A stretch of DNA of 64,000 nt. Source: Schizochytrium sp. TIO01. Lineage: Eukaryota; Protista; Bigyra: Labyrinthulomycetes. The position numbers and the translations under genes are program-made. Below, in pieces: positions 34,366 through 61,400 of this stretch. The stretch is from the NCBI GenBank assembly GCA_004764695.1, contig SMSO01000031.1, positions 4,254,436-4,318,435 on the forward strand, given 5' to 3'. Every line of letters begins with the position of its first letter. Within the stretch, counting starts at the first letter, position 1. The notes beneath the pieces are model-generated. The model was not told the origin of the DNA. It worked only from the letters and a program-made list of their open reading frames with translations, and searched no databases.

Positions 34366-35269
34366 GTTACTCTCTCCTCTCAAGGCACTTGAAGAAAGAG
34401 GCGGCGCTGAGAGCCTCTGTGGGAGAGTTGGAGAGCGCGAAAGAGAGTGCCGGAATTCAAAGACGCCACAGCGGGAAAGAAAGAAAGACCTAGGAGGTAC
34501 TAGCTGGTTGTAGCTAGCTAGCCAGCTAGCTTATGCTGCTAAGACGCCCTTCCTCCTCGAGGTCCTTTTGACTTGCCAGCGCAGTCTCCTTTGTCTTCTT
34601 CGCTCATTTAATCACGTCAAGGTCTTCAGGTTTAAAATGAAAAATCCTGCTTCCAGGTTCAGTTCTAGCAAGTAGGTAGGTGGCAGTAGCGTTACGAGGA
34701 GGAGTCCCGAGAGGGAGTCGGAGAGTAGAAAACTGGAAGTCGGCGAAACAAAAGGCGCAGAGATTTGCCGGAATGGAGAGTTATCGTGAGACTCCCTGAG
34801 TAGACCCAAGTGTCCTGTGAGGCACCCGTGATAGCGAGGGGGCACGGGCTGAAGGGGGCTACAGTAAGGAGAGAGTGGCGTCAGTGGAGTTTCGCCGAGA
34901 ACTCTTCGAGAAAGAGGAAGAGAGGAACCGAGAGCGCCGTTGAAGAGGGGAAAAAGCAGACGGTTTAATTATAATTAATTAAGTAATTAATTACTTACTT
35001 ATTGATTGATTGATCGATTGATTGTTATTATTAAAAGAAGGTAGGTGAGAAGAGAAGCAAAGAGAGAGTTGAAGAAATAGTAACGAAGAATAGGAGAAGA
35101 AAGGGGCAAGAAAAGAAAAAAGAAAGAGGAGAATATTGGTCGATGAGCGAGAACGTGCAAATCCAAAACAGCAAAACTCAAACTCAAATTCAAACTACAA
35201 GAAGCGTGGCGTTGCAGAGGCAACAGCTCGAAAGCAACACAGAACAGACAAACACAGGAGAGGCAGTAA

Positions 35270-36661
<1,392 letters not shown>

Positions 36662-37600
36662 ATCAATGTCAAAACCGGGGTTAGTGACATTGACTTGTTG
36701 ACAAAAATCTGTATAGCTAGAAAACTCTAAGCAACGCTTTTCTTTGTTTTATTTTTTATATTTTAACTCCTTCAGAATTGTAGGATATCTTGTTTTGAAA
36801 AATCCAGGACTGAGTTTCGTTGCCCCATTTGTTGCTTGTTCTCGTTTGAAATGTCGAACAATAGAAATGCTTGCAGAATGAGGTTCTCCTTTACAAAAAA
36901 ACTCGATAGGGATTCAATATGAAGCTGTCTCGATGCATAGATTTCCACGATTTTACCTTTGCATAATCTATGGTGCGCGTCAGATGCCACCCTCGTCGCT
37001 GTACAACCAATACATTGTAGCTTCATTTTGACATTAGGTACCTTCTTCCCCGACCTCCTTCAGAATCCAGAGTAAGCGATCGTCACCCCTTCTACCTGAA
37101 ACTCTACCACTGCATACGTAGTAAAGGCCTCTAATTACCACGGTAGTACTATTCTTGCACTGAGGAATTCTCTAGACGAATGTAGGCTATTCTTAATGGA
37201 CCGGCCCTCAGCTCGATTATTTTTGCTTGACTTGACTTGACTTGATTCATGAAGTTGATAGGAAAGAAACATAACCCATTCCATCCCACAACCTGCGTGT
37301 ACTCTGATCGGCAGGTGCACGTTGAGTTGAAGGTGATTCAAGGATCGAAAACATCAGCCTAGAGCACGACGAGGTTTCAGAGAGCCAACTTTTTCTATCT
37401 ATTAATCTCATCCTTTGCTTCTTCGCGGACAACGACGGTGGATCAGCGCCGCCGCTGAGAAGACAGCAGAGGTAACTCTAGCAAGAGAAGCAGCAGTAGC
37501 TTCGTCTGGTCAAGAGACTCTGCTTAAGCACAGTAGCCTGCAAATAAAGACACTTGGGCAAAAGAAACATTGACATTGATTGAATTTCACGCAGAGGCAA

Positions 37601-38107
37601 ATGGGGGATTTGGAGGCTAGAGATAATAGCATGGGCGAAGATCTCTCGAGATCTTCGTGTGAAAAAGAACTTCTAGAATGGAAAATCATCGCGCTCGGGC
37701 TTATGGGGCTCATTGTGGCATTTGTCTTTGTCCGCAGCTTCATGCTCTGGCACGTGTACAAAAAACAACGAAAAAACAAGGAGGATCATCACGGATACGC
37801 AGCACTTAATGATGATGGAGAAGCGGGTGGAGAATTTAGTGATAGCATCAGTGAAAGCTCCAGTCTTTTCAGCCCCCCCTTTCGTCCTAATGAAGGCATT
37901 GACTTTCGGAGAGCAGCAGCAAATGTATCACATACCGAGCTATATCTCTTGACATCAGCAAGTACTGACCAGCTTCAAGCTCTTGAGCAGGCGGGGCGGG
38001 CCAGTCAGGCTCCAACCCCTACCAACCGGGACGGGCAGCAGGTAGGATACATATTACACAACCAGCAACGTCCCGCAGAGAACGAAGCCAATTCGCATAC
38101 CAATTAA
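37601..38107 (+). CDS. Single-pass membrane protein, 168 aa, unknown function
   Basis: First ATG at 37601. One TM (IIALGLMGLIVAFVFVRSFMLW), a basic stop-transfer KKQRKNK, and a cytosolic YAAL (YxxPhi) motif with an acidic patch. Confidence 0.65.
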   Translation: MGDLEARDNSMGEDLSRSSCEKELLEWKIIALGLMGLIVAFVFVRSFMLWHVYKKQRKNKEDHHGYAALNDDGEAGGEFSDSISESSSLFSPPFRPNEGIDFRRAAANVSHTELYLLTSASTDQLQALEQAGRASQAPTPTNRDGQQVGYILHNQQRPAENEANSHTN

Positions 38108-41141: not shown

Positions 41142-44100
41142 TCAGAATATTGAGGGTTTCTCGTCCACCACAAAGTAAGGGAAGAGGTGCGTCACGTCTT
41201 GCCAGAATGAATCAACAATTCCAAGACCATCACCACGGGACTTCCAGTAAACACGAATGACCTTACGCTTGCCTGAGCCGAGGTCATCAAATCGCATGTG
41301 TGACCACACATATCCACGACGCATCAGCGCAGGGAGTGCCCATCCAATTGTTAAAGCAATATGCATTTTACTAGGATGCACTTTTGTTGCTTGCTGATGA
41401 ACAACGTTGCCACCTGCGATTTCGCGCGATGTCTCATCAGCCTCAAGATATGTCATTGTCTTCAAATCGAATCGCAGGCGAGCAATCTTGTTTGCTTTTG
41501 ATGACTGATCAAACTGAATTTCCTCCTGGTTAATCGGGCACAGGAATGAACGTTTTAATGTTTCCATCATGTATTCTTGCTCCAGAGCACCGTTAAGCAT
41601 GTACAAGCCAGAGGCACTAAACATATCAAGACCAGCATTGCGATAGTTCTCAATGACTTGGGGCGGCGTTGAATCGAAAAGGTCAACAAGGAAGCGCATG
41701 AGCTGTGTCTTTGGGTTTGCAAGTGCTTCCTCATTTAAGCCAACGAGCGCCAAAACTTCAGAGATAAGGCGTGAGCTTCTCCGCCAGGTCGGCATCCAAT
41801 GTTTGGGACCAAATGGCGCATTTGCAGCGACATCGCTATTCGATTCACTGGCACCATTCTTGTCTTTGGGCGTAATCAGCTTATTTGAGCTAGGATTACC
41901 TGTGGCTGAAAAATCACCACCATTTACGCTGCTGCTGCTGCTGCCATTATTGCTTTGGGCAACGCCTGGTGCGTTGGGGGTGTTGCCATTGTTATCTGCG
42001 TTCCATTGATAACCTGGCTCCTTGCCAGCAGAAGCAGCAGCGGCACGGCGACTCTTAGCGACCTCATCCTTAAGATTAGGGTAAAGAGCACCTTTACCAC
42101 GAGTCGTATAACGAGCCATTCTTCCACTTGAGTGATAAGAAGACGGCGAAGATGTCGAAGAGCTTGCTCCCTTGCCACCACTCGTGCTTGCATTACTCGC
42201 TGAAGGAGGGTCAAGATCATAAGCTGCACCCTTTCCACCGTTCGAAGCGTCAAGAGGGTCATACCCTGATCCTTTGCCACTGTAGTAACCTCCTTGCTTT
42301 CCAGAAGCATCAAAAGCACTAGAGAGCTCCACGTCAAAAGTAACATCCTTGCCACCATAAAAGTATCCACCACCAAGTTTACCGCCAGAATCATAAGAAG
42401 CACCCTTACCACCACTACCTAATGAGTCATACGATGCGCCCTTGCTGCCAGGATCAAATGTGACTTGCTTACCCACTGAGTCATAAGATGCGCCTTTGCC
42501 GGTAGAGTCGTACATAGAACCCTTGCCTCCATATACAGAACCTTTACCTGAAGATTCATAGGCAGCGCCTTTGCCGGTTGATTCATACATGGCGCCTTTG
42601 CCGGTTGATTCATAAATAGCCCCCTTGCCGGAGGAGTCATATACAGCTCCTTTCCCGCCTGCCTCATACAAAGCTCCCTTTCCGGTAGACTCGTAGATTG
42701 CCCCCTTACCGGTTGAGTCGTAAAGCGCGCCTTTTCCAAGGGAATCATAGCTTGCACCTTTGCCTGTTGAGTCGTAAGGAGCGTTTTTGCCACCTGCTTC
42801 GTACAAAGCGCCTTTACCCGAGGATTCATAAATGGCGCCCTTCCCGTTAGAATCGTAGATAGCCCCTTTGCCAAGAGAATCATAGCCTGCTCCCTTGCCA
42901 GAGTCATAGCCCGCCCCTTTGCTACCAATCGAGAAAGGTTCAAAACCAGCTCCTTTACCACCAAAGAGAGGATCATACCCGGCACCTTTGCCAGAATCAA
43001 AAGCCGCGCCTTTACCTCCTGGTGGGAAAAGAGACTCGTAGCCTGCGCCTTTGCCGTTAGATTCATAACTAGCACCTTTGCCAGAGGAATCATAACCCGC
43101 ACCTTTGCTGTTTGGCGGGAAAAGGGACTCATAGCCCGCCCCTTTGCCTCCACTTGCGTCGTAGCCAGCACCTTTACCGTCTAAAGCAAACAGTGAACCT
43201 TTACCAGAATACCCTGCCCCTTTGCCATCCTTACCGCCATACGACGAAGACCCCCTTCGTTGCATGTAACGGGATGGACCACCATGCCCGCTTTCAACAG
43301 CACTGAGCGAATTTGCACTTGAAGAATGAGCACTAGCTTCGGCGAGGGGGCGGGGCCTTTTCATGCGAATCATGTCAGAGATTTCAGGACATTCTTCAAT
43401 AAGAGCAGCTGCGTCATCCCATGGAGTCGAACTTGTCTGTCCGGAATCTGATATTGACCGTTCATTGAGATCTGCATTTTGGCCATTGTTTGATTCAAGG
43501 TCGTTCGCAGAATACAAAATCGCATCCGAGTTAGCTCCTGCTGTTTTACCGCTACTCATACCAGCATGAGCACCTCGCCTTGGGGTTGCGGAAGATCCTG
43601 ATGGTTGGGACGACATGCCAGGGGGCTCCAAGCCCTTGGCGTCGCCTCGAAGAATAGCCCCCTTTGCACCTTTATGTCCAATGGGTGCGCGCTTACCTGG
43701 AGTCGAACGTCCTGCTGGGCCAACACGGCCACGCGTAGCTGTATTGGGTAAGGTTGAGGGAGACTTTACAGGCTGAGCAGATACTGCTGGAGTTGGTCCG
43801 AGCGAGACAGATCTTTTCCCTCCTGGCATATCTGCGGCTGCTGTTGCTGGTGGTGGATTAGGAATGGTAATTGGCATGGCTAGCTTGGGTTTTTTCGCAG
43901 TAAATGATGGTGAAGAAGTTGCTGAGAGTGTGCTGGGGTCATCGTCGAGCTTTTTCTTCTTCTTCGAGGTAGTTTTTGGTTTTGGCTTGGGATTTGCAGC
44001 AGGGTTGGTGCCTGTGGTGGCAATTTCAGCTTGAAGTTCATGATAGCCCTTTGCTCTAAATCCGTTTGATCCAATATTTAAGTTGAGGTCCTTGGCCATT

Positions 44101-44396
44101 GGCCATGCCTCCTTTCGACGAATAAACCGAAGAATATCTGCTTCTACATCTGAGTTGAAGGGCCTCCTGCCTGAAGATTTACACAAATGAGCAGTAATAG
44201 ACCTTCGAAATGACTCCTCTGGTCGTTTCGGGGCTTCTTTGCGGGTATCAATCCACTCGCGATAACATGCTGTGCCGACAACGGCAGCGGGACCGCCCTT
44301 GTTATAGTGTTTGATAAAGACCTCATATGAGGACATTCCTGCGTTCTGGTGCTCATGTGGAGCATCGGGCGGTCGCCCGCTAGCGCTCTCAATCAT
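41142..44396 (-). CDS. Uncharacterised ~1084-aa probable nuclear regulator: basic N-terminal domain, GKGAxY repeats, C-terminal PAS-like domain
   Basis: Uninterrupted 3.3-kb ORF with first ATG at 44396 (the track starts at TTG 44537). Repeats are conserved at the protein level with variable synonymous codons. KKKKK NLS; C-terminus ends with PAC-like ...FWQDVT. Confidence 0.9.
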   Translation of the reverse strand: MIESASGRPPDAPHEHQNAGMSSYEVFIKHYNKGGPAAVVGTACYREWIDTRKEAPKRPEESFRRSITAHLCKSSGRRPFNSDVEADILRFIRRKEAWPMAKDLNLNIGSNGFRAKGYHELQAEIATTGTNPAANPKPKPKTTSKKKKKLDDDPSTLSATSSPSFTAKKPKLAMPITIPNPPPATAAADMPGGKRSVSLGPTPAVSAQPVKSPSTLPNTATRGRVGPAGRSTPGKRAPIGHKGAKGAILRGDAKGLEPPGMSSQPSGSSATPRRGAHAGMSSGKTAGANSDAILYSANDLESNNGQNADLNERSISDSGQTSSTPWDDAAALIEECPEISDMIRMKRPRPLAEASAHSSSANSLSAVESGHGGPSRYMQRRGSSSYGGKDGKGAGYSGKGSLFALDGKGAGYDASGGKGAGYESLFPPNSKGAGYDSSGKGASYESNGKGAGYESLFPPGGKGAAFDSGKGAGYDPLFGGKGAGFEPFSIGSKGAGYDSGKGAGYDSLGKGAIYDSNGKGAIYESSGKGALYEAGGKNAPYDSTGKGASYDSLGKGALYDSTGKGAIYESTGKGALYEAGGKGAVYDSSGKGAIYESTGKGAMYESTGKGAAYESSGKGSVYGGKGSMYDSTGKGASYDSVGKQVTFDPGSKGASYDSLGSGGKGASYDSGGKLGGGYFYGGKDVTFDVELSSAFDASGKQGGYYSGKGSGYDPLDASNGGKGAAYDLDPPSASNASTSGGKGASSSTSSPSSYHSSGRMARYTTRGKGALYPNLKDEVAKSRRAAAASAGKEPGYQWNADNNGNTPNAPGVAQSNNGSSSSSVNGGDFSATGNPSSNKLITPKDKNGASESNSDVAANAPFGPKHWMPTWRRSSRLISEVLALVGLNEEALANPKTQLMRFLVDLFDSTPPQVIENYRNAGLDMFSASGLYMLNGALEQEYMMETLKRSFLCPINQEEIQFDQSSKANKIARLRFDLKTMTYLEADETSREIAGGNVVHQQATKVHPSKMHIALTIGWALPALMRRGYVWSHMRFDDLGSGKRKVIRVYWKSRGDGLGIVDSFWQDVTHLFPYFVVDEKPSIF

Positions 44397-47231
44397 AGCG
44401 CTAATGATAGTGTTGTGTGCGGTGTAGTTTTGTGTAGTAGAGTTGGCTCCGCGTGGAGCTCTCTTGGCTTGAAGATTTCTAACTTGTGAGAGATTTTTCC
44501 TCCGGTCTTCCACCAATGTTATACTCCTCGGTTGCAAGTTATTTCCCAGCTCTGCGTCTGGGTTTTGCTGCGCGGAATTCGTTAATCAACGGGCCAACAA
44601 AATGTTGTGGACACTAGAGGACTCCCTCAACGTCCCCAACGCAAGCGGGTTTCGTTCTCGAGTCCAACAACAGTTCACTGAAGCAAGTGAAACACCCAGT
44701 ATCTATTCTGCACGTGAGAAAATATGTATACCGCACACGGCTACCTTTCCAGCTAACTCCGCCTCTAGCTGCGCAAAGGTCCCCCGGCCACGATTTCGCT
44801 GACTCGGACTATGCTTGCCTGCTCGATTTAGTTGAGTCGATCAGCTCTTGATCTTCTTGGTTTACCAGCAAGCGCGACGTGAGGAAAAAAGGACAGACAG
44901 AAAAGCAGGCCGAAAAGCAAGCCCAGCTTTGATATGAACCTGTTTGTTACGAAAGAGAAAGGGAAATGAAGTGAAAGAAGAAAGAAAGAAAGAAACACAA
45001 CAGGAAAAGAGGAAAAGAGAGAGGAAAAGGACCTCGTGCCGGTCTAGATCGCGCGGCCTAGACGCTGCGAGGTTTCTTTGTTAGCTCTTCACGCTGTTCG
45101 TTGGACAGCTTTGATCAGGAGCGAGACTGGAATAGATCCACGTTCCGCCGCAAGCCTCGGACCTGTTTCTGAGACAGGTCTGGGTTCTGCGGGATAAAGA
45201 AATGGATGGGGATAGCCACGAGGTGAGGAAGGACGAGGAAATGGAAATGCTGAGTGTAGATGTAAACGAGACCTGGTTTTGGACAGACCGGTCAATAGGC
45301 TATCGACAGCGCGCAGACGAGAACAAAAGCCTAGCGAGACAGCTGCGATATGAGGTCTGTCCCAATCAATGCTGCCGTGAGTGCAACTCCAGGCAAGGAA
45401 AACTAGGTGGCTCCTCCCTGGCTTCAATAAACAATTGAATATATGTATCAATGTCCCGTTCTCCGCACGGGCTGCTGATTCTACTACTGACGATTGTTTG
45501 ATTGTTTGTTTGTATGATATACCGTGCTCCTTTGACGTTCTTTCCTCAGTCAAAGCGGATTGACTACGATTGCGTGCTGAGAGTGAGCGATCGGCCCCAG
45601 AGACAGAGGAGCCTAGTTAGATTATGGCTGATTGAGGGTTTGCTGGTACACTGATCCAATATTGAGCGAGTGAGGAAGTGCCGCTTTCGATTAATTGCTT
45701 GCTTGCTCGCACTGTGTCTCTCTTTCTTTGCACTGTAATAATATAATAAGCCCTTTCCTTGCCAATTATTTGCTCTGGAAAGAGAGAGATAGGCAGCAGT
45801 AGAAAGGAAAGGAAAGGAAAAAAGAAAAAGAAAAAGGGAAGAAAAGGGAAAAAAGAGAAAAGTAACCCGGAGAAGGAACGAAAACAGGACGAAGGAACAA
45901 ACAAACAAATAAACAATCAAAGAAGAGAAAGAAATCAGAACAGCACCAGCAGCGGTAATAGTAAACAACAAGCAGAGGCTCTCGATGAATCAACAAATCA
46001 ATCAATCAATCAATCAGCCGGCCAGATCGACCCAGCCAACTCGCCAGCCTAGGATCCACGGTCCACGGACGAGAAGAGGCGCGTATGCTGTCTACCTGCG
46101 AATTCTGGTCTTCGTAGCTGTAGAGATGGGGGATAAATAAGCAGAAGACTTGCTGAGCTGCTGCGGCTGCTTTTGCTTATATATTGCTTTTCTATTCCCT
46201 TTGTTGACGTGCCGAGGCAAAAGGTCAGACTCCGCCAAATACTGCTCACAGATTCCGTGTGAAGGATCAGTAAACCTCCTCGATCCCCCAGGCCTCTACA
46301 CCTGTCCTGTAGGCTCGCCTGAAGCTGATTGGACGGCCTTGACGTTGCTGTTGCTTTAGCTGAAGAGGGATGAGGATGCTTTGTTTTTGAAAACTTGAAA
46401 ACGCCACGATGCGAATGGCGAACGAAGTTCAATCCTCCCCCGAAGAGCCTCGAGAGTCGCTTGAATAGACAGCAGAGGGCCAGGCCGCGCCCTGTCTCCC
46501 AATCCAGTCCTGGTCCACGTAAAATCAATGATAATCTAGCCTCGTAGCCAGCCGCGGAGCTTGCGAGCTAGCTAGCTGCAGCTACGGCGAGCGCCAAGTT
46601 GCGGTTTTGGTTCGTGGCGTTGAATGAGTACTAAACATAAAAGAATAAGCACCAAGTTGTACTATTGCTAATGCGAACGAATGAATGAATGATTGAATGA
46701 ATGAATGAATGAATAAAAACGAGTGAATTCTAACTACACTACCATAGTGCTATATGGTGGTAGTATGGGTGTTAGCATTGCTTACTCAACTTTGCGAGCG
46801 ATGATGTTTTGAAGAACATCAACATTGAGGGAAGTTGCTATTATTGTCACGATCGCTTTTCTATTTACTTCATTTTTATTTTTTTTAAAACAACTTTAAA
46901 AATAACTTCTTACTGCAGAACAAAGGCAGCCTTTCAACAAAGTTGTATTAAACAATTTTTATAAGATTGTTTCTTCAAAGAAAAGGGAAAAAAGTGAATG
47001 AAGTAAAGTAAGAAAGAGAGTATACCAGATCGAGTAGCAATCGTAGTAATCGCCGTGGGAGTGAACGAATTTGAAAGTGAAGAAGGGACTATTTGGTACG
47101 TATTTAAAAGCACAAAGAGTAATGAAAATGAAAATGAAAATGAAAACGAAAGAGAGACTACTGCTAGCTGCGCATCTAGCCAGATAACTATAAGTAATTT
47201 CAAATGCGACCCATCATACTCCTCTCTTTCC

Positions 47232-47257
47232 TTCCTTCATTCATTCATTCATTCTCT

Positions 47258-47288
<31 letters not shown>

Positions 47289-47376
47289 ATTTTCCCTTCT
47301 GCTATGAAATGTTTATTCTTCTCTCGCATACATACATACATACGTACATACACATACTAAATATACGCGTATACGT

Positions 47377-47419
<43 letters not shown>

Positions 47420-47420
47420 G
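47232..47420. repeat. (TTCA)n, (CT)n, (CATA)n and (CAGA)n microsatellite cluster
   Basis: Direct reading. Confidence 0.85.
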
Positions 47421-50400
47421 CTGTCCTTCGAGGAGCTAGCGAGTTTAGCTTCCAGCAGGTTGGATGAGACGAGCGCTATGCACGGCGAGGAGGCGGCTCA
47501 TAGCCACTCGAGGCCGTGCAGGCAGAGGGGAAGTAGTGTTAGTCTCGTTGTACGAAGCGCTCGAAGTGCAAGGCCTCCTGAGAAGGAAGGACGCGTGAGG
47601 CAAGAGAGCTCGAGGAAAAAATGAAAGAAATGTCAAGACCAAAAAAAAAAGTAAGACGTAGCTTCATTTTAATATAAAAAATAAAATCATTCTAAGCTCC
47701 ATTCGGAATCTGAATAATTATATTAATAATCATAAAAGTATAAAAAATAAATAAATGAAAGAATTTGGGGATAGGGAAGGAGACGCACTTTCTCCTTTCC
47801 TTTCTCTTGCATGACTAAGAAACGAAGGAAAAACAAGAAAAAAGATAAAGAATGTGTTAAAAGGTATAAAGAAATCAGGCCTGCTACAGAGGCACTTACT
47901 TATCTACCGATTATTCTTTCTTTCTTTTACCCTTTCATATGAGAGTGTCTTTGTTTGGCCTACATTTGAGACCGGTGAATGCTTTTGCTTCTTCAGATAT
48001 AGCCCCCAAGAGGCAGGAAAGCAACGCAACTCAAGGCCAAGCCTTGCCCTTCCCTTTTCTCCCTTGCGTTGCTCCCTCGCAGGCCTACGATAGCTTGAAT
48101 GAAAGGATGAGAGGGTGAGGTGATTGGATAGATTGCAAACAAACCTTTTACTTCAACAAACTATTTTAATCAAAAGTAAACAAAACAAAACAAACAATCG
48201 AAAACAATCGAAACAAAGGAGAGGACACACCTCATCAGTTTGGGAAAGGAGGCATCTGTCCTCGTGGTCTTATTCAATGGCGCTTGGGATTGTCTTGGAT
48301 TTCCAAGGCACTGTACCTTTTATCGCTGCGGCTGCGGCTCAGGCAGGTTGGATATGGGTGGCCGGTTCCAGAGAAGAGGTTTTCCAGGGCGTAGGCCTGA
48401 GGATCTGCGCTGCCTGTAACGGAGGTCGATCTTGGTTTTCGTGCGCTGACGAAAGAAGGTTGTAGTTATTTTCGCCTGTTTCCCAAGATAGAAGGTACCT
48501 AGGTAGGCGGTTAACTAGTCCCTTTCAATCATTCATTCATTCATTCATTCATTCATTCATTTTCTCTTTCCTTCTCTGAAAGAGTTTTGTTGTTGGCTCT
48601 ATGGAATAATTAATCTAGTGTTTGAGTTGGTACCTAGGTAGGTCTAATCATAATAGGGGTTAGTGAGCTTTCCTCCTTCGAGTGACTGATTTGAGTATTT
48701 CATAGATGAACAGGAAAGGGGAATCAAACGAAGCAAATTGAGGAAAAGAGAGAAAAGGAGGAAGAGAGAAAGAGAAAGAGGGAGAGAGAGATAGAGAGAT
48801 AGTGAGGGAGGGAGGGAGCGAGAGACGGGGGAGAGGGAGACAGAGAGATACAGAGATAGATAGAGAGAGGAAGAGTCGGTGCTTAGAGAAAAGAGCTTCT
48901 CCCGTCTCCTCCTTCGCAAGAATTTCTCTTTAGAGCAAATAACTTTAGCTGGCGTTCCCTTTTCTCTTTCTTTACCGAAGTAAGAAAAATAAAATAAAAA
49001 TTTTTAGAAGCGATTCTAATGTCAAAAGCTCCCGCCCGATCGGTTATGATATCCTGTGCGAGGCCCTGAAAGAGCGAACAAGGTGCATTTTGTGGGGCCA
49101 GACGCTCGCAAGAACGTCAATTTGGCCTCTCTGCAGGTTGGCTATTGAGAAGCTCGCCAGGTAAAGAGGGGCAAAATTGAGCAACAAATAAGTATGGCGC
49201 TGTGATATCGAAGGAATTGAAAGAAAGAGTCAGCGAGGAAAACAACAAAAAAAAGGCATGAAGAAAACACTCTTTTCAGATGAAAATAAAATAAAATATA
49301 AACATTAAAATATACTTTTACGTGTCATAGCACAAAAAATAGTTCCTTGTTAAATACTGGAAGCACTTTATTTATTTATTGTTTATCTTCATTTTCAATC
49401 AAGAACATCAATATAAATTAACAAAAGTAAAAACCAAAAATGTTCTTCTCTTTCTTTCAAGATCGCAATTCCCAAGCTGCATCCCGCCTGCCTCCAGTCT
49501 CGATCAGCCGTTTTTTGCGAGCTCCTAGAGGCATCTGAGTGACTTCCTCGGGTCTGACCAGCTCTTCGGGCCCCATTTCCCCACCAAGACGCACGCAGGC
49601 AGATGTACGTTTTACACGTGTAAAAAAGGTTATATTTTCTCTATTTTTTACACGTTCAGGAGAAAACAGAGAGAAAGAGAGAAAGAAAGAAAGAAAGAAA
49701 GAAAGCGCCTGTGTTTTCCGCCCCGCATATACAAGTTGCCAAGTCTCGTGCAATTCTGGTGAGCTCTGCTGTGGCCACATTAGTCGATCGCGAGAAAGGA
49801 GTTAGCGGCCCATCAGGCTCTGTACATCCTTTTCCGTTGCTCTTGGCCCGGCGACTAACCTCCTTTGCCGTGGGTATGTATGTTCTGTCTGTATGTATGT
49901 ATATTCAGGTGCTTTCATTCTCCAAAGATCGAATGAGCTGCCTGCCATACATACTCCACACTCTGCAGTTGTTTGACTCGAGCGATTGATGTCTAATCAT
50001 GTGCCTTGGTTCACCAGAATCACAGGACTTCAGACCTCACACGAGCTTTCATCTTTGCCAGTTGACAGCGGCTGTTTCTGTGGGCGCTTTGAATACGCAC
50101 GTGTCGTCGCCTGGCGAGGCAGACAGACCAGACACCTCTTGGGTTTGGTTTTGTGCGATACATGTCCGAACTTGGTTAGTATTAGTCAATCAGTTATGCC
50201 GAGTGGCGCGTGGACAATGAGCAATCGCTGGCTCGATGATGAGCATTTGCCTAGCCGTGAGGCATCTCCAGCCTGGTCAGCCTGGTCTCTTTTGATAACA
50301 ACTGCGTCATTATAGCTAGATTTCTTGCGTGGGCTAGCTTCACCGACGCTGGAAAAGTGCTCCGGGTCTGCTGCTTGCTTGCTTGCTTCATGTTCATGCA

Positions 50401-51296
50401 TGTTTGCACGAAGAGCTGTCTTTTATGGAATGGTGCGTGGAGAGAACCTCGTTGTCTAGCTTGTCCATCTCGACGCGTGGGGCTGCACCATTTGCAGTGA
50501 TGCATTGGCCTTTTGATCCATCGTTAGATTGATTGACCTACCGACTGGTTGTTAGAGAGTTGTGACTGAGAGACTCGACCCATTCGTAGATTGTTCCATT
50601 CCTCATTCCTTCTGTTAATGCTTGCTTGCTTGCTTGCTTGCTTACTGGCTGCAGGAATGACCTCTCCCAAGAACCGCAAGTTCAACTTACTCGGGTACCT
50701 GGACAAGCCGCGAGACAGCAATGCCAAAGCGAGGCTTGCCTGCCTGGTTGTTCGGCTGCTACTACAGCGAGGAAAGCACAGTCCCATCTACAGCCTGACT
50801 GAGCAGATAGATAGATGCATGCATAGGAAAGGGAGCTACACTCAGTCCTTCGTTCTCCTTGGATAGACCAATCTGCGCAAGTCAAGATGCAACAGTGCTA
50901 GCGTTACCGCTACCGTGCTACTACCGCTCGCTTCGTAGCATGCTCCTCTAAAGGTATGGATAGCTGCGGACCCGTCTCACGTTTTGCAATTTCTTCGACT
51001 ACTCTCGAGGAAACAATCAGTTTACTTCCCTTAAGCGGAGGGGCCCACTCGATATTGTTTGCTTTTAGTCTGTTTTTCTTCTTTGTTTTTCTTCTTCTGA
51101 AATTAACAGGTTTCCATTTAACTTTGTTTTATTTTCTTCTTCTTAAAATCACGTAATCGCCAGAAAAATGCAATAGTGTACCTTCTTGCACTGTTATAAA
51201 TTGTAAAGAAGCCTATAGATAACCTATAGATAACAATGCAATTGTAGTAATAACTAATAATAAAAGTGTGCAGAAGGCAGAAGGTAAGAAGGCGGA

Positions 51297-51378
51297 TAGC
51301 TAGCTAGCTAGCTGATACTTAGTTAGTTAGTTAGTTAGTGGGTTAGTGGGTTAGTGGGTTAGCTAGCTAGCTAGCTAG
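51297..51378. repeat. (TAGC)n-(TTAG)n-(TTAGTGGG)3-(TAGC)n compound repeat
   Basis: Direct reading. Confidence 0.85.
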
Positions 51379-54300
51379 GTTAGTAATACTGCTTACGCTG
51401 CAAAAGCAAGTTTGACTTCGAAGGGTGCGAAGAAAAGAACCGTCTCGTTGGCCTCCACGGACCGTCTTCTGCGCGCAATTCGCTCCGGTAAAGCGGAGCA
51501 TCGTGCGAGTTGGGCGGAGAAAGCCCGTTTGAGCCCATGCGGAACCGGAGGTCTCAGTTCTCGCACGCGTAGACCTGGCCGATCGCCACGGTGGCTTTAT
51601 GGCGCTTTTGCTTGCGAGTGGCGATACCCCTGCTCGCAATATTTTGGAAAGCGCGAAGTGAGATCGTTGGAATTCCATAAAACACAAATTTTTATTTTAT
51701 TAAAAAAGAGGATGCTGTAGGTAGGTAGGCGCCTATAGGTACCCAGTAAGGCAGAAGGGGAAGAAGAAGATGTACCACGGTCATCGCTTCGAAGCAAGGT
51801 GAACAGATACGCAGGCGCGAAGACAAATTCGAGAACCCACCACGGCAAAGAGAGTCCACGAATCCTCGAAATGGCCGCTGGAGATCTTTCTAATGAGCGC
51901 CACCTGCTATGAAGGAGGAGACAGCCGTTGCGTGGGCTTAAGGCAGAGCAACGGAGCTGCGATTGACCAATGAGCAGCATTCTGTTTATTTTTGTTGATC
52001 ATAATAATAATAAATGAATGAAAAAAGCCACAAGAAAAAGAAGAAAGGAGGCGGAGAAAGGAAAACAAAAGAAGAAGAGAGGAAAAGAGAGGAAAAGAGA
52101 GGGAGGGTGCTACGAGGAGGTTACAATAAATAAAAGAAACTAGGCAATTAATCAATTGAGTCAATCAATCAGTCAATCACTCATGCATTTATTGATTTCG
52201 TTCAATCAGTCCATATATCAATCGGTCAAGCGAGGGAGCGAGCAATTATTTGGGCTCAAACGAGGCGCTGGTTCGCCTCAAGCGATCAGACGGTGCGCCG
52301 CAGCTCTCTGAACTGACGATATGCGAGAGTGAGCACATCCATCTTCTGCTGATGGATTGTTCGCAAAAGAATGTAACCCAATATGGTACCGGCGATGGCA
52401 ACTGAAGTTCGACCACAGACTATCTCTTCTATGTCCGTGGCAGGGAAACGGTGAAAATCATGAAGAATAAATTCATTCAAAGAGAGAAAGAATCAAGACG
52501 GGCAGAAACAATTTATTAACGCCGTTGTCATTGATGCATCGTTGAGGTATAATATAAAAGGTTGGCGGAGCTGCCTTCAACCAGTATGTATGTAAGTAAG
52601 AGGGTGAGGAAACGTTCGTGCAACAACAGGAATGCTTGTGGGGCGAACTTGTGAGACATTATAGTTCATTTACCTTCGCAATCCTTTTCCATGGTGAAAA
52701 GCTTGGCTCGGTAGAAGGTTGACTACTGAGCTGATAAAGATAGAAACTCCCAGTTGTTCTCATCTTAATACTGTTTTTTGAAATAAACATGTACACTCGT
52801 TTCCACATATTTTAACTTTATTAGAAAAAATGTATTACAAAGGCCTATTGCACATTCTTTCTCATGTTTTTCGACTTATATATATATATACTAAAAAAAG
52901 AAGTGAAACAAATAAATCAAATAGATTCAAAAATGTTTTCGATTTCGATTTCAAAAAATAAACAAACGAAAATGAAAAGAGGTGTCGCCTCATGGATCTG
53001 CTTTCAGTTGCAAAAACCTACGGTAGCTTTTCCCATAGGCAGGTGCTAATCCAAGGTCAGACTTGATGTGTTCCTACGTACCTTGAGCTGATGAAATGAA
53101 GAATTGAATTCTTCGAGTTCATCGTCCATCGAGATAGATCTCTAATTCCAGCGAATGAAGCCGCGAAGACGGACCCCGGCCCAGGTCCTCTGAAGAACCA
53201 GCCGAGTGCTGACGACGGCCTCGCGATCTCGCGCCCGGGTAGGTGGGCAAGCGAGCAGACGGACAGAACCAAGACAGGCAGCGCCGTCGCAGGCACGGAG
53301 CTTCGGTGGAGGCGCTCTCCTTGAGCCCCTCGAAACTGGAAGCCGCGAGCACGCACGTTTGCAGCTTTTAGGCGCCCTTATCAATCCCTGACGGTGGTAC
53401 AATCGATCAATCAATCAATCAATTGATCAATCAATCAATAAATGGAGAAATAAACAAACAAATTAAAACAGGCAGAGGTGGGCGTCAACGTGAAGGTGCC
53501 GGCGACGGCGAAGTTGTTTATCGCATGCACGAGCAAACGAGCTTGGACCATCGTGCGTGGAGCTCTTGAATGCATATATATATATGGATGGAAACATGCA
53601 TCCATATGCATGGCTACTGGCGGCGTGCTCGGATGCTCGCGTGTCTTTGAAGCCACAGAACAACCTAGGGCACATGTCATCCTCCCGCTACTCCGATTGA
53701 TTTGGACAGAGGAACGAACTGAGATTGCCAGGACCTCCCAAGTATCGCAAATAGTGCTCGGAATCATCACATGAGCAGTTCTGCTGCAGCGGAGGGAAAC
53801 CTCCCTCACGAAGAAACGAGGCAGGCACCAGAAGGCGAGGGAGCTGCAGATAGCTAGACTCGCCTTGCAGCGCCAGGTCTTCGCGTTCTGAGCAGAACTT
53901 TTTGACTCCTTGCTTCGCTTCGACAGGCGGAGGACAGGACGTGGCACGGATACGGGCTCGTCGTCGCACTAGGCATACGCACTATACTATGCACTATACA
54001 CGCACGCATGCGAGTTGACGACGGCCTCTGGCGACGACGGCGATGAGAGACGGCCGTCGTGACCGTCGTGGGAGGGAGTAGAGCCCGCGGCAAAGTAGAA
54101 CCAGAATCAGGCCACGCAGAGCCAAGTTCTTCACTTGTTCTTGCTTGCGCTGTCTATCGAGCCACTCGCTCCCTCTGACGTTCTTTCTTTCTTTCCTTCT
54201 TTCTTTCGAGGGAAACTAACTAACTAACTAACATTCTTAATTATTGCGCAAAAGGAAGTCTATCCCCGATTTCCTCAAGGAGAAGGATAAAAAAAAAAAA

Positions 54301-54597
54301 CTAAAAAAAACTAATGAAATGAAACTTAAAAAAAACTAAAAGGGGGCAAATAGCTTTCTCCTATGTTCGTCAAACCTTTTCATTTAACCATGAGAAAAAG
54401 ATGCATGCAAGAACCGTAGGTAAGGAAAAGGTACCCACTAGGCTAGCTAGGTACAATAGCAAAAGATGAGAGAGAAGAAAAGGGCTGATCTTTGAATTCT
54501 GAAGCCGGTGTTTCGACTCAGCTTGACTCGACTCGACGCAGTTCAAGGTACCCAAGCCTAAAGGAGATCCAGGGATCCATCCATCCATCCCTCCAAC

Positions 54598-54628
<31 letters not shown>

Positions 54629-55406
54629 AAGCAGGGACGATTGAAGCCAGGTTCCTCAGTCAGAACGCTGCTATTCTCACGCGGCTGCTCCTGCAGTTCA
54701 TAATTATCTGCTGCTGATTTCTTTTCTTCGAATTAATGAATTAAAGTTCATTGATGATTTTATAGTTTTTAGTTATTTTTTCTCCTCATACATACATATC
54801 TTACCTTTCTCCTCAACAAACAACACGTCTTTTCCTCCACCTAATGCCCCGCTCTACCCTTTAACCTACGACTCACGTCTCTACGCTCACCGCAGCCGGG
54901 TGCTAGGACCCACTATCCCCAGCTATGTTAGAAGGACCCGCGAACTCGGAACTCTGTAGAACTAGCCACAGAACTGGCCTCACGGCAGGGGACTTATTCA
55001 CAGCGTCCATGGATGCTTCGGCTTGGGAGTCTCAGAGTTAATAATTAGTGCCTAGCTAGTAGCTGGCTTGATAGCTAGCTAGCAGTACTCCAAAGAAGTA
55101 GTTTACAGGGCGACATTTAGACTTGTAAACAGAGAGATGGAGTCTGAAGAAGAGACGTAAGCCTTCGTCTGGTTTCTTTCCATTCCTCTGGGGAGATAGA
55201 TAGAGAGGTCGGTAGGTGGATAGATGGGTGTCGTCTCATGTAGTTTACCTACGAGCGTGTTCTTTTCATTGTTTCCAAGGTCTGAAGGGAAGAGAACTAA
55301 TCACAACTAATTGACGCGCTCATTCAGCGCTATAGTGCGAGAAAAAGTGGGTCTCCCTGTCCTGTGTCTGTCTAATTGGGCGAATGCATAATTGGATGAA
55401 AATAAA

Positions 55407-55442
<36 letters not shown>

Positions 55443-58400
55443 GGAAGGAAGGAAGGAAGGATTGACTTAATGACAGAAAGAATAGCAAAGCTGTCCGAAA
55501 CTTGGCTGAGTTCTACGTGGGAGAAGAAGAAGAAGAAAAAGAAGAAGAAGATGAGTCGGTAGGAGAACCCGCGCCGCGTTCGCACGAGGTCCCTGATTGG
55601 GCCCAGTCTATTCGTATTCGGACTCAGGGCTGTGCGAATTACTGAGTAGGTAGGTTAGGTATCCATGTTGCGGGGTCTCTTCAGCCAGCACTGCTTCAAA
55701 AGATGAAGCTGTTCACTGGGTATGGTGAGAAGAGAAAGGCGGCCTTTTAGACACAACAGCAGAACTGGAGCTTGAGAATACTTTCACGTATCTAATTAGT
55801 CCTAGTCCTCTTCCGCGCTTCTCTTGTTCCCTAAAGTTGTTCGTCCATTTTTTTATTTAGGTACCTACATAGGTAAACAAAGTATTTTTTTGTTTTTTTA
55901 AAGGAAGAAATCAAATTCAGATACTTGAGCTTGTACTCGTACCCTTTCACTTTTGAAAGGGCGAGTAGGCGTAGTAGATGCCTAGGGTCTGATAGACCGC
56001 GCACGAAGACACGGGGAGCGAATGGATGGGCGCTCGGGACCGGAGAAGCGGGCAGGCAAAGGTAATTGAAGGGATCGTCAGAGGAAAGCCTCGGCTTGAG
56101 AGAAGCTAGAGACGAAAGCCATAGCTGGCGCAAGTGGTGCGGGTGTCCATCTCTCGCCAGCTTGAGAAAATCAGATCTCCACTGAGCTACATTCTCAATT
56201 TTCTCATTAACTTAGACCGCGTTTTTTTTTCTCTCTCTCCTTTTTTTTTCCTATAAATATTTTCAATAGATAAAACAGCACACCAGCAGCATTAGTCAAC
56301 CTTAATTATTAACTTTGAACTTTTTAAAATTGAATTTTAATAATAATTTTTAAGAACAATCGTCAAAAAAAAAAAATGTTTTTTCTTTCGTTCTTTCTTC
56401 AAATCCCTTTAGCCCATCACCCGCAACAAGTTCTTTACTTTGCTGCGTTGATACAGCTTTGTCTTTATGAAATGCGCACACTTGGAGGCGTGTCTTGACG
56501 CAGTTCTCTGCAAAACCTTCCAATGCATGCAAAAGCAACAGGGATTGAAACTCGAATTAGAAAAAGCGGGAGGAGGCTGCTGAAAGAAGATGAAGAGTCA
56601 AAGCTGAATGCTTTTCGGGCTCCCCGAGTGAAAGATTTCACGGATCACCGAGCAGGACTGTGGGGCGTTATTGAATATACCTTACGATTGATTCACGATC
56701 CACGATGGTTGATTCACTCATGAAATGTGAAGGAGGACTAGCCGACACAACGACAGCCTTTACTAGCACTGATTCTGTTGGTCATGGATGCATCATGGGT
56801 TAATAACTGAGCCTCCTTCTTAAGTTTATTTTCCTCCTTTCTTTAATTCTTTCCAACTTTGCCCGCACTTCCTTTCCATTTTTTTGTTTTCTTGTTTTTT
56901 TTGCTGCTCACCGTCTCTCAATAGTACGGAGCTTCTTTCAGAAGAGGAGAAGAAGAGCTTCTCGTTGTTTCTTTGTGAGCCTCCAATTGGGCACGCGCTT
57001 ACTAATGACAGTCCCAGCAACTCTAACAACTCTCTGCACCTTCGTCTCGTGTCTGTCTGTCTGGTTTTGCAGATTGGTGTATGGCGCAGAGGCTTATATT
57101 CCTTTTTCACATTTGCGTTTGTTTTTACTTTCTCACAATTTATAGACTACAAATGATGAAAACTTGGTTTGGAAAATGAATGTCCTCTCGTGTGAATCAA
57201 AGTTCCATAAGTTCAACTTGCTGCTATTATTACTATTATTATTATTATAGCTTGTATTACTTTATTACTTTATTTGTTATGTTCTTTGAATTTTTTCGTT
57301 TTTAGTTTTTAATTAGATTATTTAAAAAAATGTTCTCCATTTGTTTTCAATTGAAGAACTAAATGGACTTTTCAACAAGAGGTACTACAGACAGATGGGA
57401 AGTCGATCAGAGCAAACAACACCACATAAATGATGCTGCAGCAAATTTACTTACGGTTGTTCGACGACGATGTGCGTGCGACCCCAAGGGTCGAGCACAA
57501 TGGTCGCAAATATCGCAGCTACAACATACAATCAGATTGTCAACTTGAAGTGGCCGAAGCTTACAAGTTGTTTATTGGAAGGCATGACCAGTACCCAGAT
57601 GAGAAAGAATCAGCAACAGAAACACTACAGTCATTGGTTTTGCAAAGAAATTGGCAAAAGCAACCTTCGCAATCAAATGCATGTTCCCCCCTCCATAACA
57701 AATATGCTCATGAAAGCGTTATGATGCAGTCCATACCCATACCTTTGTTTGGCTCTAACATGGCGCACTGGCGCGTTACAATTTTTTTTTAGGCCTTGGC
57801 AAGTACGAACTTGTTCGGCCAAAGTCTTTGGGCAAACTCGTGACAGCTCAGCACTGCTAACGTCGCACTCTAAGAGCAGTAGCCGCAGAAACGTATTTCA
57901 CACATTACACACGCAAAAGGCAGAAACAAAAGTGCCTACTCTGTCCTCGGTATTCAACTTGCTGGAAAAAGAAATGCCTATTATTAGGTATTAGTTGTCG
58001 TTTTGAGAAGGGTTCTTTGGTTGCGAGAAGGTCGCTCTATTAATTCTACACCTACCACCTACGTACCCACGAAAACCAGCATTTATCTCGCTCGTTCTGT
58101 TTTTGGAGTATTGATTGCAATGTTGAGATTGTTCCCTTGCATGCCATGATCACTACTTCATTAAATGCGACATCAACCGAAGTTTTGTTTGTAGATCCCA
58201 GCTTCCATTAATCACTTCAAGGAGGTCTTCAAACATAGAGAGTGAGCGCACTCAACCCTGAAGCAGTTCACAAAACACATTACTTCAGCTATGTCGTCAA
58301 TTAGCCAACCGGAGTTATCACTGGATAGCATGAAAACCTCTCTTTCATAAAAGGAAAGCACTGCTCCACAATATAGTGTTCGCACTGAATCTTCACGCCA

Positions 58401-61400
58401 CAGTGAGCGCAGTAGCAAAGATGGTGTGAGTGAGCGTCGAAGAACAAGAAAATAGATTTGCAAGTTCTTCGTGCCTGTCTGGATGATTAACCTAGTTCGG
58501 AGACCCTTCGCACCACTATCAGTTCCTAGTGGAAACGCAGGTGCTTCAACATAACTCATTTATTTTTATTTAACATTTACTAGTGATAAACGAATTCATA
58601 AATTACAGACAATCAAAAGAAGGGCTAACAGAATAGCACTTTCGGAGGCATCGGAATAGCGACTTCTGCAAAACTCGGTCCAGACTGCAATGAGCTCAAA
58701 GCGACCTCTTCGTCGCCATGTGTATAGAGTCAGGCAGCAGCAGCGGCAATAGTTCTGCTGGAGAAGAAAACAGAAGCGGCGAACAGTCAGGTGACATACT
58801 GCTGGCGATCGCTGTGGTTGGGTCTGTGGTTGTTGCTTTGAAGCTAATAGCTTGCTTCCCCAGCTTTTCTGCCTCCATATGCTACAATGTACCGAAGCTA
58901 GGAATGTCCGAACTCTGTCGCTATTGATCGCATGATGTGAATCGAGACTCTTCAATTCTAGTTTCGACCAGGGAATTCCACAGTCTTGGGTGCGAATTCT
59001 GACACTTGCAGGGCCTACAACATATGCCACGCCACGGTCCATGGCTGCTATTGTCTTTCGATTGTATGCAACAGATTTCGGACTAGAATTCGAACGCAGC
59101 TTGAAGCTCTTCTGAGCGTGCAAGGACTTCAAAACCAGCGCTTTCTTTCGATGCGCGGGCATTTCAAGCAGCCTGTTATCTCTTTCATAGTCTCTGCGCA
59201 TAACTTTCAAGTAGTCTGACTAACCAGGTACCTAGTTCCTACCATAGGAAATCCAAATCGAGAGATGGAGAAAACTAAACCATGGAAGAGAAAGCACTTA
59301 GAAAAGTGGTTTCTCTCGATCGTCCTAGGCCATGTGGCGCATCGAGTGAACCGGCTGACAAAAAGCTAAAAGAAACCAGCTCAAGAGACGAAGCATTGGC
59401 GAGTTGAATTCAGAAGTGCGGTAGTGCTTTGTATGGGTATCTTGCTTTCTCAAAAATATTTCCGACACTAAATTCTGTGTTTAATGTGTAGCTAGCTACA
59501 TATGTACATAGTAATACTACACTACCTTCTTAATTAGATATACACGTACCTACTTTTTGAACAGTGTTTTTTACAAAATGTGCTCACCTTTTCTCAAAAT
59601 TGCTCTGTCCTCTCATGAGCTCTTTCCGTTCATGTTATTCTGCCCCCAGTACAGGGTGTCTACCGTCGATCTACCTCAACTGCTGTGAATGAAACGCGGA
59701 ATAGCTCGCATCGTTTTCTTCACGACCTAGCTTTTGCTCTTCCGCAGTATTATAATAGATCAACAACGCCTCTTTCCTTCTGCGCTTTTCAAGTTGTCAT
59801 CTTTACGTTTTATCATCTTTTCAATCCTTTTTCTATTTGCAAAAGGTACTTTCATACATTCTTTTTAAAAGTAATATTTTAAAAACTTTAAATAAAAACT
59901 ATGTTTAAATCAAACTATTAACTAAAAGAAAATACTAAATGAAGAATTTTCAACGAAGTACTAGTGACAGACCATAGCAGTATTAGGTGGTACTTACTGA
60001 GTGCTTCATTGCTTTCCATTGTTCCATCACAGCTCATGACAACTAAAACCATTTCTCCTCCCTCTCACTGCGTTCCTTCCCTTCTCCGCCCCATTCTTCC
60101 CACATGCTACCTTTCAAAACACCCTGTGAGTGACACCTTGGGTCCGTCTCCCGCATTGGGACCGCAGTGTGGACGCCGCGCCACGCACCGCCGCCGATCT
60201 GCAAGCGAATCCGCGAATTATTTCGATCCCCGTGTTCCCCGCCATAGAAATTCCACGGCGGCGAGTTGCAGAAAAAGGCACACACGCATTGCAGTGCGTG
60301 TCTATGAATGTACTAGCCTATGATGTATCTTCAGCGTTGATTGTATGAGTGTCTGATGTTATAGATGGAGATATTAATATTAGGGTCGGTGGCGGAAAAT
60401 GAAGCCATCGATCGCACAACATCGATACATTCGTGCATGCATAAGGATAGGCACCTATCAGCTTGGGCTTGAATGCTGAAAAGCGAAGAACGTGTGTTTA
60501 TAAAACCTCTCAGCGGAAGAGTCGAGAGCATTGAAGAGATAGAAAAAGCTTGAAGAGCTACTGCTTTAGTTGTTCAAGAAAAATATGTAGTATGGATACA
60601 AATAATTCCAGATACTGCATCGTCAGATATTGCAACTAGGCGAGGTGTCATGGTCTATGAAGGCAAATGCTTGAAACGTTTAGTCTTTGAAAGGTGGACG
60701 GGCAATCAGCGAATTAAAAATGCGACTACAACGGAAAGAACTCTTTCATGCAAATATGCTCATGTAAAAGGCCAAACGAATTATTTTTAACCGAAGTAGA
60801 GTCCTCTAAGTGGGTAACTTACTTAACGACTTGGCAAAAAGCCTTTCTTGTTGGCTACCTATTGGGTCTTCAACATCCAACCATCCAGTTTAGACAGACA
60901 TAGCAATGATTATAAAATATCTGCTCATCCGTATGGCAACATCACTTTAAATCCTAACTCAATTATGACATAATTTTTCTTCTTCAACAAGCTGTCGAGT
61001 CTGTTGTTCTATGCACTCCCTTCTCCCTGTTAGACCTCAAGTTCAAGTTCGGAGTTTACAAATTTGCTCAATGTTCTGATTCGAGAGCATAACATCAATA
61101 CTTTTTCCAACCTACGCTAAATGTCCACTTCATGTGGCTTACAATCAAGATAAGACACGACACCCCAACCCGTGGAGAAAAGGGATTGTAGAAATGAAGT
61201 GCATGGCTTCCTTGGGACGTCGTTGGTTCTGCACTCTGTAAGCTAGCTCTGTTGGGGAAGAGAAGGACGAGGATTGATGCAGCCAGTCTACAGGTTATTC
61301 AACTAGCCACATAGCGCTTGCTTGTTGAAAGTTGAAATATAGAAGGGGGCTGCGGTCTTCCTTTTTGCGAGCAGTCAAACTGGGTAGAAAAAGCAAACAC

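Follow-up and report, generated by a model that had tools for sequence, protein, structure and literature searches.

The stretch of DNA analysed here, the window, comprises 64,000 nucleotides (nt) of contig SMSO01000031.1 from the labyrinthulomycete Schizochytrium sp. TIO01 (assembly GCA_004764695.1). Its minus strand carries a gene of 1084 codons, which an earlier note, made by reading the DNA letters, had proposed as a new class of sensor-transcription factor. The minus-strand frame 41142-44537 is open throughout and contains 1131 codons when counted from a TTG. The ATG at position 44396, which gives a product of 1084 amino acids (aa), is the likely start because the resulting N terminus, MIESASGRP, matches the start MINDAASGRP of the orthologous protein of Hondaea fermentalgiana (P0002) in the alignment. 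No intron is required for the gene so predicted. Codon usage, scored as log-odds trained on known genes from the same genome, gave 234 for this open reading frame (ORF), and the known genes of the window (myosin, HSF and polyubiquitin) score 137-239.

From the N terminus, the predicted protein consists of a basic N-terminal domain (N-domain), a Lys-rich cluster, a linker rich in Ser, Ala, Pro and Gly, 35 short repeats, a helical segment and a PAS-like C terminus, which is the layout that the earlier note had read from the sequence (Table 1). It had also recognised no bZIP, bHLH, Myb, HSF or zinc-finger motif, and the Pfam scan was indeed empty for these and for every other family. Pfam searches with the whole protein, with either end and with all relatives and paralogues gave no credible match, and neither single sequences nor profiles found a match in sequence searches of the PDB. 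A literature search found no description of the protein family. Within the resources searched, the architecture is undescribed, being represented neither among Pfam families and solved structures nor in the literature.

A two-domain protein family

We used the C-terminal module (C-module, residues 856-1084) as the query of an exhaustive HMMER search over 1.84 billion representatives, which returned ten proteins at E <= 0.001. Besides the window protein itself (P0001), the matches include the Hondaea orthologue P0002, a protein of 1212 aa to which public data add no other close relative. The two proteins are colinear throughout and share 81% identity in the N-domain and 67% in the C-module. Six other proteins, cluster representatives of 411-541 aa (P0003-P0008) of which one is from Aplanochytrium, combine both domains by way of short linkers, whereas in P0009 another N terminus precedes the C-module. 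A Myb-like character of that N terminus is no more than a hint, as the Pfam match (E = 0.069) fell below the cut-off and found no support in the PDB; the remaining match, P0010, is a repeat artefact. All named sources are labyrinthulomycetes (Hondaea and Aplanochytrium stocchinoi), and MMETSP, JGI, Logan and ENA records without an organism label contributed the rest. The family is apparently confined to labyrinthulomycetes.

The genome of TIO01 itself contains eight further loci with an N-domain, at 30-45% identity. At four of these, the same frame or an adjoining one also encodes the C-module, which brings the total to nine loci, five of them with a C-module. The family is a diverged multigene set with 27-40% identity. 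Whether the two terminal domains occur together in labyrinthulomycete proteins had been raised as a check on the original proposal, and they do so in P0002, in P0003-P0008 and in four of the paralogues. As judged from these alignments, the combination of N-domain and C-module is the conserved architecture of a small, undescribed protein family. A word-index search with the family alignment retrieved just its own first sequence.

Three loci vary this architecture. In one paralogue (L010:4533-7254, minus strand; G000:C13:3519532-3522253), the open stretch with the N-domain and that with the C-module are in different frames and have 167 nt in common; the split could reflect a frameshift, a short intron or decay into a pseudogene. 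The profile of the C-module also detected two ORFs without an N-domain, of 843 aa (L036:2777-5308, minus strand, on G000:C32) and 700 aa (L037:2541-4643, minus strand, on G000:C35), which end in the C-module with …IQDVTHLYP and …IQDVTFLYP, respectively. They have in common an N-terminal region of ~140-165 aa (26% identity, E = 3e-4) without a Pfam match and appear to form another subfamily around this C-module.

In NCBI and UniRef, the Hondaea orthologue P0002 bears the name 'Transcription elongation factor spt5', which was assigned by an automatic pipeline. Membership of the family in Spt5 can practically be discounted, and we conclude that the label is a misannotation. All that speaks for it is the database name. 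The name was presumably prompted by the repeats, which as a tandem array of short peptides loosely recall the C-terminal repeat region of Spt5. Unlike Spt5, both the window protein and P0002 lack the NGN and KOW domains in Pfam searches. Moreover, a canonical Spt5 of 980 aa with an NGN domain is encoded elsewhere in the genome (L043:1510-4452, minus strand; G000:C32:1656175), and this true Spt5 is without GKGAxY repeats.

Predicted folds of the terminal domains

The AlphaFold2 (AF2) model of the 229-aa C-module, computed with 12 sequences, has a predicted local distance difference test score (pLDDT) of 89 and a predicted template modelling score (pTM) of 0.85, and it places the helical subdomain and the PAS domain in one unit. 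The helices of the subdomain fall within the segment that had been read as helical in the sequence (about 41490-41830). The PAS stretch, model residues 114-216, has a pLDDT above 90. Its secondary structure elements follow the order of the PAS fold, with two strands (117-122 and 127-131), three helices including a long one (133-139, 148-151 and 155-172) and three strands (174-182, 189-198 and 205-212). In the Foldseek comparison, the top matches were PAS or related domains (LOV, PYP and phytochrome) with probability 1.0, E values from 4e-4 and target-normalised TM scores of 0.64-0.77; CLOCK/BMAL1, HIF-2a/ARNT, NPAS4, AHR, LOV proteins and bacterial sensors are among the matched proteins. Both the model and these superpositions bear out the PAS-like C terminus suggested earlier. 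A signature common to the whole family frames the fold: R-x-F-L-C-P precedes its first strand, and Q-D-V-T/S follows its last. The latter resembles the D-I-T motif found at the end of many PAS domains.

At the level of sequence profiles, the PAS domain is cryptic: Pfam found no PAS match in the window protein or its relatives, and the PDB profile search was empty. The hhalign comparison with the four classical PAS_9 domains of the genome gave a probability of 0.3%, a weak test given the small alignment, and the ESM Atlas returned for the C-module just fungal DUF clusters of low feature overlap, which we judged to be chance. One of the four PAS_9 matches of the genome (L038; G000:C31:4271751-4272014, minus strand) deserves mention in its own right. 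It is a LOV-like domain in an open frame of 435 aa, with the sequence GRKCNFLQG and a Cys at the LOV position, and it is possibly a blue-light receptor in a heterotroph.

The N-domain, about 105 aa in length, was modelled by AF2 from an alignment of 16 sequences as a compact domain of seven helices with a mean pLDDT of 95.5 and a pTM of 0.87. In all 16 members the domain is basic (isoelectric point 7.9-10.7), and the alignment has eight conserved K/R columns, features that would fit nucleic-acid binding without amounting to proof of it. Pfam has no match for the domain. Against PDB sequences, the single domain found nothing and the profile found nothing below E = 0.39, the value of a match to HMGB1 over 38 residues, on which an HMG box could not be accepted. 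For the model, the best Foldseek match in the PDB had E = 2 and BFVD gave nothing; VIA-align against 48,161 representative chains reached a best Z of 3.9, and re-scoring over Foldseek's own list a best Z of 3.3. No usable match came from the ESM Atlas, and the single domain sequence found nothing among metagenome contigs. The structure prediction and Foldseek comparison that the earlier note had recommended for each domain identified a PAS fold within the C-module, but left the N-domain with a confident model and no recognisable fold. With model residues 1-82, weak structural similarities extend to domains of the winged-helix/forkhead type (among them FOXA2, FOXK1, FoxO1, histone H1/H5, the cullin WHB domain and PCI domains), and HMG chains are absent from the matches listed by VIA-align.

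Within the N-domain, Cys44, His70 and His119 (model residues 27, 53 and 102) stand out, as the Cys is invariant and the two His residues are nearly so across the family, with two paralogues each lacking one His. These three residues might form a metal site.

Repeat array, linkers and genomic surroundings

Across residues 391-772, the repeat array comprises 35 matches to the pattern [GS]K[GNDQL]xx[YF], and Tandem Repeats Finder (TRF) reported it with a period of 27 nt and 65% matches. In the nonapeptide, a G, a K, a G or A, an aromatic residue, an acidic residue and a Ser are conserved. The fixed positions nevertheless use every synonymous codon available (four for Gly, four for Ala, both for Lys and both for Tyr). 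When repeat units are compared, positions with the same residue have differing codons in 62% of cases, and the nucleotide identity is ~62%. Because the codons have diverged while the motif was retained, the array is old and kept by selection at the peptide level; recent slippage is excluded by the same diversification of codons between units. The Hondaea orthologue has an array of GK-x3-Y/F-E/D-S repeats in different flanking sequence, and all six relatives with both terminal domains (P0003-P0008) are without GKGAxY repeats. On this distribution, the repeats are a linker insert of just two members, the window protein and P0002, outside the definition of the family. The proposal that the repeat region is part of what defines the class is refuted by these six relatives.

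Table 1. Features of the 1084-aa protein gene, in coordinates of the window
Feature	Position	Strand	Basis
Complete intronless coding sequence, 1084 aa, with stop codon at 41142-41144	41142..44396	minus	Single open frame; colinear end to end with Hondaea orthologue P0002; codon-usage log-odds 234
N-domain, residues 21-122; basic, all-helical, family-defining, no recognisable fold	44031..44336	minus	
S/A/P/G-rich low-complexity linker, residues 131-390	43227..44006	minus	No alignment with Hondaea except for one short motif
Lys-rich cluster ANPKPKPKTTSKKKKK, residues 134-149 (KPKPKTTSKKKKK, residues 136-149); resembles a nuclear localisation signal	43950..43997	minus	Read in sequence
Short acidic-hydrophobic motif followed by KRPR, residues 322-349, SSTPWDDAAALIEECPEISDMIRMKRPR	43350..43433	minus	Conserved with P0002
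35-repeat array, [G/S]-K-G-A-x-[Y/F]-(D/E)-S-x, residues 391-772; modal period 9 aa, net charge about 0	42081..43226	minus	Counts, spacing, TRF
Second linker, S/A/N/G-rich, residues 773-855	41832..42080	minus	Composition
Helical subdomain of the C-module, residues 868-952	41541..41795	minus	AF2 helices at model residues 13-97; conserved across the family
PAS-fold domain, residues 969-1071, ending in family-wide Q-D-V-T/S	41184..41492	minus	AF2 and structural matches

Over residues 131-395, the linker in front of the array contains 15% Ser, 13% Ala, 11% Pro and 11% Gly and has a net charge of +15. It cannot be aligned with that of P0002 apart from a stretch of 21 residues, TPWDDAAALIEECPEISDMIR, which is identical in both proteins and is followed by KRPR. 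This conservation suggests a short linear motif combined with a nuclear-import signal. The linkers of the paralogues are rich in Gln, Asn, Ser and Pro.

More than 19 kb of gene-free DNA had been noted upstream of the gene. We found no ORF above 204 aa within 44.6-64 kb, and neither this stretch nor 13.9-35 kb contains an ORF of at least 80 aa with coding-like codon usage, a test that would miss genes built of short exons; all log-odds within 44.6-64 kb were below 13, compared with 137-241 for the known genes. The gene-free stretch is real at this resolution, but it is not special to this gene, as coding-like ORFs number about seven across the 64 kb of the window, which has two stretches of ~20 kb (13900-35000 and 44600-64000) without one of at least 80 aa. 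The whole genome amounts to 64.07 Mb in 37 contigs, and the figures quoted for the Schizochytrium limacinum SR21 assembly are 63 Mb and 6,838 genes (PMC7179369). On those figures, the SR21 assembly is similar in size and gene density, and a gene-free flank seems normal for a gene-poor genome.

Two neighbouring ORFs were also inspected. On the plus strand at 37580-38107, downstream of the gene, an ORF of 175 aa with the hydrophobic helix IIALGLMGLIVAFVFV and coding-like codon usage (log-odds 26.5) is probably the gene of a small membrane protein. The minus-strand ORF at 35198-36748, antisense to the polyubiquitin gene, was dismissed as an artefact of the repeated ubiquitin units, its weak Pfam matches being spurious.

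Proposed function and comparison with known systems

The analysis establishes the anatomy of the protein, from which we infer a series of functional steps. In the reading that we prefer, with a probability of about 0.4, the window protein would be nuclear and regulate transcription. Its basic N-domain would contact DNA or chromatin, and the disordered linker would serve as a low-complexity region for activation or condensation, enlarged in this protein to 35 evenly spaced Tyr/Lys/acidic nonapeptides and also carrying a conserved acidic-hydrophobic motif. The C-terminal PAS module would gate this activity through dimerisation, through the choice or binding of a partner, or through a small ligand. 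The colinear orthologue, the two-domain family, the PAS fold and the compact basic N-domain speak for this reading. So do several traits common in transcription factors, namely the K/R clusters and the composition of the paralogues' linkers, the divergence of the multigene family, the retention of the repeat motif at the protein level and the conserved motif within an unalignable linker.

Several observations weigh against this proposal. The cluster KPKPKTTSKKKKK, previously taken for a nuclear localisation signal, is present in the window protein but is not conserved in the alignment with P0002, although other family members likewise have K/R clusters, such as KKKKK and KRPR, in their linkers behind the N-domain. 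The HMG box as a lead for the N-domain failed, with a probability of only 0.4% over 12 columns when its alignment was compared by hhalign with 11 HMG boxes of the genome. As for a cofactor of the sensor, the PAS region has no LOV-type NCRFLQ motif, its F-helix His is not conserved and it contains no conserved heme-type histidine. PAS domains also occur in proteins without DNA binding.

The main rival explanation, unlikely on balance but to be taken seriously, is that the protein is a co-regulator or signalling scaffold that contains a PAS domain but does not itself bind DNA, like PERIOD of animals. The N-domain would then be a protein-interaction module, and the PAS domain would pair with other members of the family. 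Such a role would agree with the failure to assign the N-domain to any DNA-binding fold or family. It would also agree with the use of the same C-module behind at least two other N-terminal regions (that of L036 and L037 and that of P0009), that is, at least three unrelated regions including the N-domain, as would be anticipated for a shared dimerisation or sensor module. Against it, the N-domain is basic throughout the family and has conserved K/R residues, as is commoner in domains that bind nucleic acids than in modules for protein-protein contacts, and no partner is known. The same basic character would suit a scaffold that binds RNA through the N-domain and forms condensates, with phase separation driven by the Tyr/Lys/acidic repeats, and such a scaffold need be neither nuclear nor transcriptional. 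Thirty-five regularly spaced aromatic residues in a net-neutral stretch rich in Gly and Ser, in a motif selected at the protein level, would be well suited to that purpose. We nevertheless regard it as quite improbable, as Pfam matched no RRM, KH or other RNA-binding family, and repeats that are missing from the six relatives with both folded domains cannot be the core function of the family. Because most members are without the repeats, a cytoplasmic role in RNA binding or condensates is less likely to be what the family has in common.

Returning to the nuclear regulator gated by a PAS module, a bolder form of this proposal can be entertained, which we consider conceivable though doubtful. 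In it, the ~105-residue N-domain would represent a previously undescribed class of DNA-binding domains in eukaryotes, with a fold that has no counterpart in the PDB and confined to labyrinthulomycetes. Wired to a cryptic C-terminal PAS sensor in about a dozen paralogues per genome, it would give rise to lineage-specific one-component transcription factors that respond to signals.

Thraustochytrids are industrial producers of docosahexaenoic acid and carotenoids as well as major marine decomposers, and their gene regulation is little understood. In its N-domain, the family offers a specific candidate for a DNA-binding domain of a new type, and its members are candidate regulators responsive to environmental signals in a transformable organism. 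Even if the N-domain did not bind nucleic acids, the family would still add a new PAS architecture and a fold to be explained. Recognition of the family also corrects the 'spt5' misannotation, which is now spreading through databases.

Among known systems, bHLH-PAS factors and aureochromes have the order of effector followed by sensor that we propose for the window protein. The PAS domains of the bHLH-PAS factors CLOCK, BMAL1, HIF-2a, ARNT, AHR and NPAS4, which serve dimerisation and ligand binding, are among the best structural matches of the window PAS domain, and in both cases the PAS part follows an N-terminal effector, a putative one in the window protein. Unlike these factors, the window protein has no bHLH and no PAS match in Pfam, it has a single PAS fold after a helical subdomain instead of PAS-A and PAS-B, and its modules are more than 700 disordered residues apart.

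Aureochromes resemble the window protein in belonging to the stramenopile lineage and in having a sensor of the PAS superfamily C-terminal of the effector, and LOV domains are among the structural neighbours of the window PAS domain. Unlike aureochromes, the window protein lacks a bZIP, as judged by Pfam, and reading of the PAS region revealed neither the flavin-binding GxNCRFLQ motif nor its adduct cysteine. Because this motif and the cysteine are absent, there is no sign of light sensing in the window PAS domain.

The repeat array finds its closest known likeness in the FET proteins (FUS, EWS and TAF15), a likeness of composition and pattern and not of homology. Both have dozens of degenerate short repeats with one Tyr each in disordered sequence rich in Gly and Ser. 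The activation domain of EWS contains about 30 degenerate SYGQQS repeats, and in EWS fusions such a region is a strong activation domain. Unlike the FET repeats, the repeat of the window protein (GKGAxY[D/E]S) has an invariant Lys and an acidic residue in a 9-aa period, and the array stands in a protein without RRM, zinc finger or RGG.

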